A stretch of 63,848 nucleotides of DNA, counting the filler, from Salisapilia sapeloensis CBS 127946 (Eukaryota; Protista; Oomycota), in assembly GCA_023334545.1 (NCBI GenBank). It is 10 parts of 10 records of this genome, joined end to end, with 100 filler letters (N's around TTAATTAATTAA, not from the genome) between each part and the next. Parts side by side here need not be neighbours in the genome. Positions count along the whole stretch, not along the records: positions 27,901 to 49,315 come from JAADVB010000285.1; 9 more parts are not named here. The stretch is one strand, 5' to 3'. Positions 27,901-49,315 of this stretch are shown here, piece after piece (positions within the stretch are counted from its first letter, which is position 1; every line of letters starts with the position of its first letter). The notes beneath the pieces were generated by a model. The model saw nothing but the letters and a program-made list of their open reading frames with translations, was not told where the DNA came from and did not search any database. The position numbers were made by a program, and so were the translations under genes.

Positions 27901-28080
27901 CACCTTAAAAGAGAAAACATCTAAAAATAAACTCACGGACTTCCACATCAAAGGTTACAGATTCAAACGTTGGTATTTCAAGACTTGTCCAAACCAGAAC
28001 ACCCAAAGTGATCCCTTCATGGTCATCATTATTTCAAGTAGGCATTCCTTGCCAAACTAGCAAAACTACTGCTGGCTAGC
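27901..28080. repeat. Left copy of the inverted repeat bounding contig 27901-49315
   Basis: 27901-28041 is the exact reverse complement of 49175-49315 (141 bp). Similarity continues to 28080/49136 with only 2 mismatches. Confidence 0.95.
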
Positions 28081-44686: not shown

Positions 44687-47138
44687 ATGGCGTTGTACGT
44701 GTGGGGTGCGAATGGAGCGCAGCAACTTGGCCTAGATGAAGAGGGAAAGCAGATTTTTGAAGTGGTATGGTTTTATCGATTTATTCCAATGATTTGGAAG
44801 GATAAAGGGGAGAATAGCTGATATGATACATGATAGCGCAAGGTGGATGCGTTTGCAGCAGAAGAAATTACGGACTTTTCAGCTGGAGAACATCATAGTC
44901 TTGCTGTGAATGAGTTTGGCGATGTATTTGCTTGGTACTTTATTTACAAATCCTCCTCTCGAATCCAAGTTTGTAAGATTGTGCTTGGTATAGGGGAAGA
45001 GGAAGAGAGGGACAGCTTGGATTGGGTCGAGAAAAGGAGGAAATCGCTACGCCGGAACGTGTTCCGGCTTTAGAAGGACAGATTATTGTCAAGACGTCAT
45101 GTGGAGACTCCCATTCGCTCGCGTTATCGGCATCGGGGTACTCCATCCATACCACAAGTATCGATAGATGCATCTAAATCCTTGCACACACAGATCTGTA
45201 TTCATGTGGGGACTTGTACCGGAAGGTCGAAAAGGTCAAAGTGAAGAAAAAATCGATCAAGAGTCCATCTCACTCGCTGGTATGGAGCAGCAGGATCCAT
45301 TGCCACAAGAGCAGTTCAATCGTCACATGGACAGTATCATGCAACGCCGCGTCGAGTCTTCCTATGCTCAATTTGAGACCATCAACGGCGCAGCACCAGT
45401 GACGGAGAATTCAAAAGAGAGAGAACGAACTGTTAGAGTTCCTTCCTTCTCTCCTCAACTATGCAAGTCTCTCAATAGCTATTACATTGTCAGCATATCC
45501 GCCGGGTTTGCACATTCCATGGCTATCACTTCCACCGGTACACTCTTAGCCTGTGGATACAATGACAGTGGACAGCTCGGCTTGGGCCATCGTCGTAACA
45601 TCTCGACGTTCGTCCAAGTCGAGACGCTGAAAGACTACTGTATCTATGACGTTGCTTGCGGTCATCAGCATTCCCTCGCGTGCACCTCCATAACCGAAAC
45701 GAATGCTTCCTCAGGTAAATTGTTTTCGTGGGGATTAGGAGCCTTTGGTCAATTAGGCACAGGGTACATTACAATCTCGTACGCTCCAGAGGAAGTACCT
45801 GGCATGACTGAACCAGTTGTCTCCGTTGCAGCTGGAGGCCATCATAGCGTCACTGCGACTGCCTCTGGTCGAGTATATTCCTTTGGACATGCAGAATACG
45901 GTCAACATGGTGTCAGCCAACGAGCACACGATTTAAATAGTGGTCGAGAGTACCTCAGTCCAAAGGTACAAAAGTATCTTGACGATAACAACATTCGCAT
46001 CTCTCGCGTTACTTGTAGTGCACACAGTACCTTTGGATTATCTTGGGACAACATTATGTATTCCTGGGGATGGAACGCTTTTGGTGTGCTTGGAAATGGC
46101 AAGGTGCAATTGTCTGTAGATCCGCAGCCTGTGGACAAGCTAAAGGATACTTCCGTCTCACACATTGGAGCTGGAGCGAACCATGCTGGTGCCATTGCCA
46201 AGGCTAGAGGATCACATTACTCTCTTCGTTACAACCGAGTATTTGATCAAGAAGAGTTTATCGATCTTGTCTTCATCGTCGGAGGCGTCGAACGTACGGA
46301 ATTAAAAGCGCATCGAGCGATTGTAGCGACGAGGAACTTGTACTTGAAAGGATTGCTGGATACGATGGAAAGAGTGGGTGAAATGGATGAGCATGGAAAA
46401 TTGGTTGTTGATGCGTTTGACGATGTCGACACGGCACTCTTCATGGCATTCCTCTTGTTCCTCTATACTGCTCGCGTATCGATCGCATCGCATCGTCGTA
46501 ACGCGTTGGGAGAACTTGCGAAGAGAATGCATCAGGATGATCTCGAAATGGAGTGTCAAGCTGCTTGGAAACGCACGACCAAACGAGATGCTGCGGCGGA
46601 GGATGTAGCGCTCCCATTCGTCCAGGCAATGGAAACACTCGTGCTCTCGCCTAGATACGCTGACGTGGAATTTCTGTGGCCAAATGGCGAGGACTACGAT
46701 GTCATTCCGGGTCATAAGGCTGTACTATCCCAAGTGGACTACTTCCACACGATGTTCACAGGTGGATTCCTGGAAGGGTCTACTCAGACACTTGAAGTGG
46801 ATACTTCCCAAGATATCCATCGAATCCCACTTCAATTCATGCCGCATGATGGAGTGACCCAAGATGCGTTCCGACTGGCGCTCGGCTGGATTTACACCGG
46901 ATCTTTCAAGCCTATAGAGCAGTGCGATCCGAATGAGCTCATGGATGTTTATGTAACCGCAAGCTTGCTTGGACTGCATGTCCTCGAAAACAAATGTGAG
47001 CTTCACCTGGCATCCTTACTACCACAGTTGGACGAAGCATCCATGAAGGCATGCTTGGACTTTGCGATGAACTTTGGCGCCCATCGTTTAGCGACAGCCG
47101 CCAAATCTGCAAGTGAAAAGAGAGAAATGAAGTCGTGA
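44687..47138 (+). CDS. RCC1-repeat and BTB domain protein, multi-exon
   Basis: RCC1 repeats (ISAGFAHSMA...CGYNDSGQLGLG, VAAGGHHSV...FGHAEYGQHG) followed by two BTB-like domains (KAHRAIV, GHKAVLSQVDYFHTMF). Start MALYVWGANGAQQLG at 44687. Confidence 0.88.
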
Positions 47139-47278
47139 AAACTTTTGCTAGTGTATTTGTCTTCAAAGAAACTGTGTTATTTCGGTCTTCAGGGTAAGTT
47201 GTGCTAGAAAATTTGAAAGTACGCGTTGACACTCGCAAGGACGAGACCACACTGAAACGATGACGGAAAGTAAGAGCC

Positions 47279-48385
47279 TTACTGGATCATGGATTTACTA
47301 AAGTCCCATGCTTTGGTCGGGTACAGTGAGTTAATGGCTTCAATGTCACCTTCGCTCAAGTCACTGCGCTGACCTAGATCGTCCGTCATCGTATCGTCAC
47401 ACATAGCATTGTCCGGGTCGATGCAGTCATCTTCTTCCGGGTCTTCGTTCAGATCACAGAATCGATCGGTCTTAGTCACGCACTCGGACTCAGCACTACT
47501 TTTACAAATCTTTGGGTAGCAGAAGCCGTAGGTTGGCGGATAGTGCATGATGCTGGATGGGTCGTATTCACCACCGACACTGACATCACGAATAGTAAGC
47601 TCGGACCAGAGTCCAGGGTCCACGTCGTCCCAGAAGACGCCAATGTTGCGTTGAGGGTGCTGGTGCTCATGGTACAGCCCAAGCGCGTGGCCGATTTCGT
47701 GCATGGCAGAGCCATACACAATCTGTCGACCGTCTGACTCGGTTTCGAAGCAACGGTCGGCTAGATTGAGCGGTTGAGCGCCGTCAAAGTTGATACCGAT
47801 AGAGCTGTTGCAGTCACGCCCGGTAGTCGGGTGTTGCAACTGGATATAAGTCGAGCATTGACCGCAGTACTTGCCAGTGTCGCCAGATCCGCATTGGCTA
47901 AACGGGAGGAATCGGACGTTGGTCTCGCTCTCGATGTTCGTCATGGCTTCGACAACAGCATCCTTCTGACTCTTCTCGAATGGCAAATTCTCATTGTATT
48001 GGTAGCAGACAACACCATTTTCCCAAATACGCTTGGACTCTACCACAGCAAGCGACAGTCGGCGTCGGCGCTCTTCTTCAACAACCGGATTGTCCAGGCT
48101 CTCCGCCAAGTCCTCGCCATTTGGGCAGGTGACGGCCGTCGCCGCTTCATGAGCATGCATCTCTTTGTAGCACGCGATCACACCCTTGGCGCAAGTCACA
48201 TATTCGTCGGTGGAATAGTAGCGGAGGGATCGGTGCTTCAGCGTCAATGCTCCGTCGTCACTCTCGCACCCGTTGATGTCGAAGGAAGTGGAGCCACTTC
48301 CGGAACTGCTTGCTGCCAAAGTGAAGTGAGGTAAAGTGGTAAGAGCAGCCACAACGAAAATAAGGCTCTTCATCATCGTGATCAT
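47279..48385 (-). CDS. Secreted astacin-family (M12A) zinc metalloprotease with a Cys-rich pro-domain
   Basis: Signal peptide; pro-region C40-x24-C65-x6-C72-x14-C87P; basic maturation site EEERRRRL; zinc motif HEIGHALGLYHEHQHPQR; Met-turn SIMHY. Confidence 0.93.
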   Translation of the reverse strand: MITMMKSLIFVVAALTTLPHFTLAASSSGSGSTSFDINGCESDDGALTLKHRSLRYYSTDEYVTCAKGVIACYKEMHAHEAATAVTCPNGEDLAESLDNPVVEEERRRRLSLAVVESKRIWENGVVCYQYNENLPFEKSQKDAVVEAMTNIESETNVRFLPFSQCGSGDTGKYCGQCSTYIQLQHPTTGRDCNSSIGINFDGAQPLNLADRCFETESDGRQIVYGSAMHEIGHALGLYHEHQHPQRNIGVFWDDVDPGLWSELTIRDVSVGGEYDPSSIMHYPPTYGFCYPKICKSSAESECVTKTDRFCDLNEDPEEDDCIDPDNAMCDDTMTDDLGQRSDLSEGDIEAINSLYPTKAWDFSKSMIQ

Positions 48386-48435
48386 TTACAGAAGTGGATG
48401 GTGTGAAAGTGGACGAGTACTAGTACTTCTCAAGC

Positions 48436-48454
48436 AGATAATCGAGAAGTGATT
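48436..48454 (-). promoter_or_regulatory. Inr+FPR-like core promoter of the astacin gene
   Basis: The minus strand reads AATCACTTCTCGATTATCT, about 50 nt upstream of the ATG; partial match to the oomycete Inr+FPR consensus. Confidence 0.45.
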
Positions 48455-48823
48455 GCCGGGGTTAGGATGAGCAAGGTCGTCGACGGGTGGATTTCGAATC
48501 GTCTTCTGTGCTGGATAGCTTACGCGATCGTACTACTCGTGTGATCGAATCTATAGAGCAAATGAGCTTTGATCGTTCTACTAGAGCAGCTTAAATGACG
48601 GCGGAGACAGCCTGCTCTATCTCTCTCTCCGTTAGCATTCGTAGCCGTCCCCAAATGGTGCAGAAGCATACAAAGATATAGTCGATCTGATAACGGATGG
48701 TTTCCAGGAAGATAACTGCTCGATATGCGGAAAGCACGACACGACGATGCGCGACTAGAAATTCCTGCCCGATTGTCTGATTTCCTTCACGCACTCGTTA
48801 AAAACACATAAGAAGAACCCGCA

Positions 48824-49150
48824 ATGTTCTCGAAAGCTTTGATGTTGGTGATGGCGCTGACGGCAGCGATGACCATGGGCACGCCGACGTTCCCCCGATG
48901 CGCTGAAGGTGGAAAGAACTGCTGCGACTTTGGAGAGGACAGCATGAGGAACCGTGGCTATGCCGTGCTTCGCATTAACGAAACCGACATCACGGTCACG
49001 TGTTCCAAGGGTGACCTCACCTGCTTCGAATCCAATTCGGAAATTCAGGGTGGTCTTGAAAGCAAGGAAGTTATTGAATGCCCTGAGTTCTTTAAAGAAA
49101 TGGAAACGGAGGATATCATCGATGGAATCAACAGAGCTAACCAGCAGTAG
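48824..49150 (+). CDS. 108-aa secreted Cys-rich protein homologous to the pro-domain of the adjacent astacin
   Basis: Signal peptide (MFSKALMLVMALTAAMTMG) and six Cys. LRINETDITVTCSKGDLTCF aligns without gaps to astacin LRYYSTDEYVTCAKGVIACY (10/20 identical), and both have a downstream CP. Confidence 0.85.
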   Translation: MFSKALMLVMALTAAMTMGTPTFPRCAEGGKNCCDFGEDSMRNRGYAVLRINETDITVTCSKGDLTCFESNSEIQGGLESKEVIECPEFFKEMETEDIIDGINRANQQ

Positions 49151-49315
49151 TTTTGCTAGTTTGGCAAGGAATGACTACTTGAAATAATGATGACCATGAA
49201 GGGATCACTTTGGGTGTTCTGGTTTGGACAAGTCTTGAAATACCAACGTTTGAATCTGTAACCTTTGATGTGGAAGTCCGTGAGTTTATTTTTAGATGTT
49301 TTCTCTTTTAAGGTG
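49136..49315. repeat. Right copy of the inverted repeat bounding contig 27901-49315; includes the last codons of the 108-aa gene
   Basis: Reverse complement of 27901-28080; exact over 49175-49315. Confidence 0.95.

Follow-up and report, generated by a model that had tools for sequence, protein, structure and literature searches.

A conserved, divergently transcribed oomycete gene pair of an astacin zymogen and a small secreted protein with a probable homologue of the astacin pro-domain

In a stretch of 63,848 nucleotides from Salisapilia sapeloensis CBS 127946 (assembly GCA_023334545.1), hereafter called the window, we analyzed a head-to-head gene pair carried by record JAADVB010000285.1 (window positions 27,901 to 49,315). 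On the minus strand, a single open reading frame (ORF) at 47279..48385, stop codon included, encodes a predicted astacin (M12A) zymogen of 368 amino acids (aa); on the plus strand, a complete and intronless gene at 48824..49150 encodes a small, putatively secreted protein of 108 aa. A divergent spacer of 438 bp (48386..48823) separates both start codons. These ORF coordinates agree with the initial annotation, which had placed an astacin and a 108-aa secreted ORF on either side of a spacer of this length. The window contig ends 165 bp past the small-gene stop codon.

Orthologous loci were identified by tblastn with the small protein in the flanks fetched around astacin orthologues. In all nine loci examined (those with enough flank), the small gene adjoins the orthologous astacin in the same head-to-head arrangement: the window, Pythium oligandrum (L001), Lagenidium giganteum (L002), Plasmopara halstedii (L003), Globisporangium splendens (L004), Phytophthora kernoviae (L005), Pythium insidiosum (L007), Bremia lactucae (L010), and a JGI metagenome contig. 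In Phytophthora cinnamomi, too, the two genes have neighboring locus tags (ON010_g12849 and ON010_g12850). Across the examined loci, the small gene is a syntenic core gene with one copy each, and the outer neighbors vary, with at least three different ones on each side of the pair: a TM7S3-like, an RCC1-like, or an ~700-aa gene beyond the small gene, and an RCC1-like gene, a 766- to 1015-aa gene, a cystatin-like gene, or a pro-region copy beyond the astacin. The arrangement is almost certainly a real, conserved, divergently transcribed oomycete gene pair. It is no local novelty of this genome but an ancient pair that Pythium, Globisporangium, Phytophthora, Plasmopara, Bremia, and Lagenidium have in common.

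Judged from its sequence and predicted model, the 368-aa protein is a secreted zymogen-type M12A astacin with a folded pro-domain. It matches the Pfam Astacin family (PF01400) with an E value of 2.3e-23 and 83.3 bits (gathering cut-off, 22.5), and a Foldseek search of the PDB with its AlphaFold model returned crayfish astacin, BMP1, TLL1, and hatching enzymes (E values of 1e-9 to 1e-7, template modeling scores by target of 0.65 to 0.70). Orthologues, 24 in oomycetes with ~50% identity, occur in Pythium, Globisporangium, Phytophthora, Nothophytophthora, Peronospora, Plasmopara, and Lagenidium; an alignment of 25 orthologues (A1) is the source of all statements on invariant astacin residues. A signal peptide is predicted at about aa 1 to 24 (48314..48385, minus strand) from the hydrophobic N terminus of the translation. 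It is followed by a four-cysteine, β-rich pro-domain from C40 to P88 (48122..48268, minus strand), which is kept in all 25 orthologues and in which C40, C65, C72, C87, and P88 are invariant. The AlphaFold model of this part (about residues 40 to 100) has a predicted local distance difference test (pLDDT) value of ~90 and consists of strands 53 to 56, 61 to 66, 69 to 74, and 83 to 85 and a helix at 90 to 97. In the subsequent linker (residues 104 to 115) the pLDDT falls below 50; this contrast with the preceding domain, together with the junction alignment given below, identifies residues 25 to ~110 as a genuine pro-region with a folded four-cysteine domain.

The likely maturation site, RRRR (aa 106 to 109; 48059..48070, minus strand), is situated in this flexible linker, as suggested by the alignment, the model, and the match to pro-astacin; R108, L110, S111, and L112 around it are invariant. 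With phmmer, R108 to W121 (RRLSLAVVESKRIW) aligned to ARVGAAILGDEYLW, the pro/mature junction of crayfish pro-astacin, and in this register the G-A maturation junction of pro-astacin corresponds to S111-L112, two residues past RRRR. In the catalytic domain, the zinc-binding motif HEIGHALGLYHE (H229 to E240; HExxHxxGxxHE; 47666..47701, minus strand) is invariant in the 25 sequences and aligned to the astacin motif, and the Met-turn SIMHY (S278 to Y282; 47540..47554, minus strand) is aligned to SIMHY of astacin. S278, M280, H281, and Y282 are invariant, and an SxMHY Met-turn with the tyrosine zinc ligand is thus present. Further parts are an acidic linker, (I/L)DEE, and a cysteine-rich C-terminal extension. 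No FxGD aspartate-switch motif was seen in the pro-region on reading of the alignment; H79, H51, and the acidic (I/L)DEE linker are candidates for a pro-region zinc ligand.

The small protein belongs to a family of its own. A word-indexed search with it gave no matches, and an exhaustive profile search was needed: the profile of seven orthologues, searched against 1.84 billion representative proteins, retrieved 17 clusters, all with E values of 1e-14 or lower, and nothing between 1e-10 and 1e-3. The named members are all "hypothetical" proteins, all from oomycetes, and Pfam, PDB sequences, and the protein atlas held no match worth noting; a search by protein features placed the small protein near generic small secreted cysteine-rich proteins, with all scores at or below 0.74. 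At minimum, this is an uncharacterized conserved family with a defined genomic partner. Its architecture is a signal peptide, a six-cysteine domain, and a tail. The six-cysteine domain (C26 to P87; 48899..49084, plus strand) follows the pattern TYPKC...CC.FG.G.M...GY......IVTC..G.L.C..GNP........CP and resembles the astacin pro-domain in hhalign comparisons, shuffle tests, and predicted strands. The C-terminal tail, EFFKEMETEDIIDGI.. (49085..49147, plus strand), follows the pattern DF..LMESRSEI.YLEGV and in the family often finishes with GAGTVK. Twelve residues are invariant in the aligned family; its own invariants are P24, C26, C33, M41, and G45, and Y46 and N71 are nearly so. The stretch FGED of the window protein was rejected as an FxGD-type switch, as the family has FG.G.M there.

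In six of six other species, a phase-1 intron lies directly past the CP codons, and exon 2 contains the tail and the stop codon; the window gene is intronless and colinear with the spliced orthologues (CPEFFKEMETEDIIDGI...), its tail matching their exon 2. Orthologues are 24 to 42% identical to the window protein, a range at which synonymous sites would be saturated for dN/dS. The AlphaFold model of the small protein is poor (pLDDT of 59), with strands at 46 to 51, 54 to 61, and 64 to 70, a bridge at 83 to 84, and a helix at 89 to 95.

Four runs (X1 to X4) of one organism, typed "RNA?" as a guess of the library type, were mapped on positions 46000 to 49315. Their contigs break where genes end (that of the neighboring RCC1/BTB gene stops at 47136). 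The core of the spacer is without coverage, as would fit RNA rather than DNA. The astacin transcript spans 47148..48641 on the minus strand (X1 record 2), with contigs of X2 and X4 ending at 48641 and 48637 and depths of 5 to 11. The small gene gives a discrete, unspliced transcript at 48690..49222 on the plus strand, a 533-nt contig of depth 288 (X1 record 3), and its counterparts in X2, X3, and X4 end at 49262 to 49272 with depths of 156 to 270; in all four runs these contigs have neither joints nor loose ends. These discrete contigs, which end before the contig edge, indicate that the small gene is transcribed as a short unspliced mRNA, and they speak against the possibility, raised in the initial annotation, that the ORF is untranscribed. 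The 5' ends of the astacin and small-gene contigs in X1 are ~50 bp apart (48641 versus 48690), and the spacer is therefore likely to be a shared bidirectional promoter region. Co-regulation of the pair, as claimed earlier, is not supported: in the sole RNA data, the small-gene contig has ~25 to 30 times the depth of the astacin contig, although contig depth is a poor gauge of expression. Two local features of these contigs were also recorded. At 48880, 23 nt from its contig end, the X2 contig is short by 2 nt, whereas X1 and X3 have no gap there; this is most likely an assembly artifact and, if real, would be a frameshift within the signal peptide. At 49239-49315, downstream of the small gene, a low-depth X2 contig (record 7) runs off the end.

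With the contig edge so near, the small ORF could be exon 1 of a larger gene that the contig end truncates, coding for a second protease or for a membrane protein of the TM7S3/TMEM198 type. Public models in L. giganteum, G. splendens, and P. insidiosum indeed fuse the small gene with a downstream TM7S3_TM198 gene (L002:2885-5537, L004:1-1047, and L007:519-2405), and only 165 bp of contig are left past the stop. The RNA contigs, however, stop at 49222 to 49272 without a joint or loose end, and an in-frame stop codon is conserved after the tail in all orthologues, the three with fused models included. Moreover, models of 121 to 138 aa without TM7S3 exist in P. insidiosum, Phytophthora capsici, and Bremia, and the JGI contig annotates the small gene and the TM7S3-like gene separately. 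On the evidence of the RNA contigs and the conserved stop codons, we rejected both a fusion with TM7S3 and an exon lost downstream, and we consider the larger-gene explanation highly improbable; the small protein is complete, as first proposed, and lacks no catalytic exon. Because the stop of exon 2 is conserved in frame, it is the fused models that are doubtful, and they are probably annotation errors. The next gene past the window edge may itself be TM7S3-like, from synteny with P. insidiosum, Lagenidium, and Globisporangium.

The initial annotation had further proposed that the small protein is a homologue of the astacin pro-region, and the likeness it quoted was confirmed on the translations: L54 to Y73 of the astacin and L49 to F68 of the small protein align without gaps with 10 of 20 residues identical, and the cysteine spacings are C40-x24-C65-x6-C72-x14-C87P and C34-x25-C60-x6-C67-x18-C86P, respectively. 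The two proteins have in common the framework C34/C40, C60/C65, C67/C72, and C86P/C87P (spacings of 25/24, 6/6, and 18/14), to which the small protein adds the cysteine pair C26 and C33. From sequence comparison and predicted structure, we regard the six-cysteine domain as probably homologous to the astacin pro-domain. In one BLASTP comparison of the two proteins with their signal peptides, the E value was 5e-5. For the mature parts of the window pair, the Smith-Waterman score was 60, a value that 0 of 5000 plain and 0 of 5000 cysteine-fixed shuffles reached. In a 7-by-7 cross-species shuffle matrix the mean z was 4.6, with z above 5 in 18 of the 49 pairs and a top value of 12 for the Lagenidium small protein against the window pro-region, whereas three decoys (the reversed pro-region, the C-terminal cysteine-rich part, and the catalytic part) had mean z values of 0.8, 0.0, and -0.1 and a maximum of 3.8. 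Comparison of the small family with the pro-domain by hhalign gave an E value of 6e-5 (Prob of 65%) with 7 sequences and 8.6e-4 (Prob of 23%) with 17, both runs in one register that pairs C34/C40, C60/C65, C67/C72, and CP/CP. In AlphaFold models of both proteins the predicted secondary structure elements come in the same succession and register, namely, three strands and a further short one, CP, and a helix, and some small-family members have M-K-H-H-G-Y where astacins show L-K-H-H-S-L.

Several results weigh against this homology and against the regulatory role that might be built upon it. The deeper profile lowers the hhalign probability, as given above, and 9 of 400 column permutations (P of ~0.02) match the real hhalign score when the signal peptide is removed from the small-family profile. 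HMMER yields 6 to 10 bits in either direction (E values of 0.05 to 1 in a 691-sequence local database), although its best matches outside the small family are astacin pro-domains, and the global profile search of the 1.84 billion representatives contained no astacin at an E value of 0.001. Foldseek of the small-protein model against the AFDB clusters found its own family (K3WC69) alone and no astacin, a result that is uninformative rather than negative given the low-confidence model. Of the five non-cysteine residues that are invariant or nearly so in the pro-domain, the small family does not conserve Y56, Y62, H79, and A82, whereas the fifth, H51, is present in 6 of 17 aligned members, the window protein having N43 there. 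These marginal statistics, together with the missing structural match and the selection effect of a match that was first spotted by eye, would suit an unrelated cysteine-rich secreted protein in which C-x6-C...CP and VTC.KG arose by convergence or chance and whose adjacency to the astacin is ordinary synteny. Such an origin is nonetheless unlikely. The likeness is seen only with the pro-region and with none of the three composition-matched or cysteine-rich decoys, and it persists across species pairs; every method arrives at the identical register, and the predicted secondary structures agree. Furthermore, each domain directly follows a signal peptide, and in the other loci examined the leading secondary tblastn match of small-family queries was the astacin pro-domain motif.

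The probable homology does not reach beyond the cysteine domain, encoded by exon 1 in other species. An extension past CP into the tail was rejected, since the tail compared with the astacin linker gave a mean z of -0.36 and a maximum of 2.6, equal to reversed decoys; the proposal that the small protein is a pro-region homologue thus stands as probable for its cysteine domain and fails for its tail. Likewise, of the partial inverted duplication put forward for the pair, probable common ancestry remains, but at the DNA level the two genes show no inverted repeat, their longest common run being ~9 nt. A recent duplication or gene conversion was rejected on this ground, and any duplication must predate the split of the lineages sharing the pair. 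The window astacin pro-domain is nearer the small family than are the pro-domains of other species (z of 4.2 to 11.9 against all seven small proteins), and VTCAKG is common to it and the Lagenidium small protein with no sign of gene conversion at the DNA level; this likeness could be due to retained ancestral states.

A separate gene consisting of an astacin pro-region was found in P. halstedii, where a 125-aa ORF on the plus strand (L003:8317-8694) lies 1.2 kb downstream of the astacin. The predicted protein has a signal peptide, pro-domain, and linker, stops with ..GLRHL where RRLSL of the enzyme begins, and matches the astacin at 42% identity across 121 aa (E value of 6e-25); no catalytic remnant follows the ORF. 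The search suggested in the initial annotation, for astacin pro-regions free of a catalytic domain, was performed with a pro-region profile among short proteins and recovered P0061, a 126-aa orthologue in another sample (L008:219-599; L009:200-580). It is 55% identical to the P. halstedii protein and begins and ends at the same points, its last residues being ..GLRRL. As an intact ORF is retained at this identity, the stand-alone pro-region is likely a functional gene, and the two ORFs show that free astacin pro-regions can be retained in oomycetes.

Around the pair itself, an RCC1-repeat and BTB-like ORF (window 45168-47138, plus strand) is convergent with the astacin 3' end, 140 bp from the astacin stop. 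An RCC1-family gene is the astacin 3' neighbor in P. insidiosum (L007) too and is found on the small-gene side in P. oligandrum; an inversion of the whole pair may account for this difference. Directly downstream of the astacin in L. giganteum, a 124-aa secreted cystatin-like protein with a QVVSG motif is encoded on the minus strand (L002:7608-7982). Fetuin-B, an inhibitor of the cystatin type, is a known mammalian astacin inhibitor, which makes this neighbor of interest.

The role of the small protein can be approached from the stand-alone propeptide-like inhibitors of MEROPS families I9 and I29 (CTLA-2, cathepsin propeptide-like), of which I29 acts on papain-like enzymes. By analogy, both proteins would be expressed from one bidirectional promoter region and then pass into the secretory pathway; in its free form, the pro-domain-like protein would bind the astacin catalytic domain, or a ligand also bound by the pro-domain, and would thereby tune protease activity in trans, like those inhibitors. 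That the small protein is such a trans-acting modulator of the astacin is a tentative proposal, less likely than not. Adjacency alone is no proof of a functional link, as microsynteny is generally high in oomycetes. A homologous but functionally independent protein is also quite possible, if short of an even chance: an ancient partial duplication of the pro-domain exon may have taken on its own role since, for instance in signaling, in binding to the wall or matrix, or as an effector in the apoplast, with the adjacency due to inherited synteny or the shared promoter. The small family does have its own invariants and has lost most of those of the pro-domain, it differs by one more disulfide pair and by a conserved tail unrelated to the astacin linker, the depth of its contig greatly exceeds that of the astacin, and its nearest proteins by features are the generic ones mentioned above. 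On the other hand, the pair is intact in 9 of 9 loci despite changing outer flanks, and the second, independent stand-alone pro-region gene kept in P. halstedii and one more organism suggests usefulness in an astacin context. A broader scheme would extend trans-acting modulation to oomycete astacins at large, controlled by genome-encoded stand-alone copies of the pro-domain that arose at least twice (the six-cysteine family and the P. halstedii-type gene) and serve as secreted trans-inhibitors or folding helpers; this is speculative and rather unlikely as a whole.

Oomycete pathogens secrete astacin-like M12 proteases, and a conserved, highly expressed partner gene would be a candidate regulator of them. 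The astacins of these pathogens are candidate virulence factors; oomycete astacins are already known (PMC9848320; PMC8035641), and in Phytophthora infestans all three tested astacin-like M12 proteases promoted lesion growth in planta (PMC8035641). In full-text literature on oomycete astacins, trans-acting astacin prodomains, and the family accessions, we found neither the partner family nor a free pro-domain protein described, in line with the earlier remark that no such system was known for astacins or oomycetes. If the small protein does modulate the astacin, the stand-alone propeptide-as-inhibitor principle would be extended to metzincins, a natural specific scaffold for astacin inhibitors would be at hand, and M12A would have its first endogenous regulator system derived from a pro-domain, in plant and animal pathogens. 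Even if that reading fails, the pair still corrects the public models that fuse the small gene with a TM7S3-like gene.

Oomycete effectors of the PcF/SCR type are highly expressed and consist of a signal peptide and a small cysteine-rich domain. The small protein is like them in this order of parts and in its apparently high expression; unlike them, it is without a match to a named family and is a single-copy syntenic gene rather than a lineage-specific expansion. Among regulators of astacins, Sizzled inhibits tolloids with a Frizzled-type fold, and to our knowledge inhibitors of the fetuin-B and Sizzled types occur in animals only. Fetuin-B (PDB 6HT9, 6SAZ, and 7AUW) is likewise a secreted extracellular regulator of astacins, but neither its cystatin-type fold nor the Frizzled-type fold is related to the pro-domain.

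The protease itself is similar to the M12A zymogens crayfish pro-astacin (3LQ0) and pro-meprin β (4GWM) in the order of signal peptide, pro-region, and catalytic domain, in the HExxHxxGxxHE zinc site and SxMHY Met-turn, and in the pro/mature junction, for which the pro-astacin one could be aligned. Unlike their short and extended pro-segments, however, the oomycete pro-region of ~85 aa is predicted to be a compact disulfide-bonded β domain with an acidic linker and no FxGD seen in it, and the protein has a cysteine-rich C-terminal extension. That an astacin-family pro-segment supplied separately can inhibit its cognate mature enzyme is known from meprin β, whose synthetic propeptide inhibits its own enzyme in trans (PMC13680589), although that peptide is short and linear, neither a genome-encoded paralogue nor a cysteine-rich domain. 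In Plasmodium, a subtilase is inhibited by SUB1-ProM, a stand-alone propeptide-like protein encoded in synteny with it (PMC6993865). The protease clan is another one there, the oomycete enzyme being a metzincin, and the homology proposed here is probable; in contrast to SUB1-ProM and to members of I9 and I29, the oomycete protein does not keep most pro-domain-specific invariants. Like SUB1-ProM, though, it is a small free protein probably related to a protease pro-domain and encoded in conserved synteny beside the protease gene, and the pair is by this analogy a plausible astacin counterpart of the stand-alone propeptide-like inhibitors.

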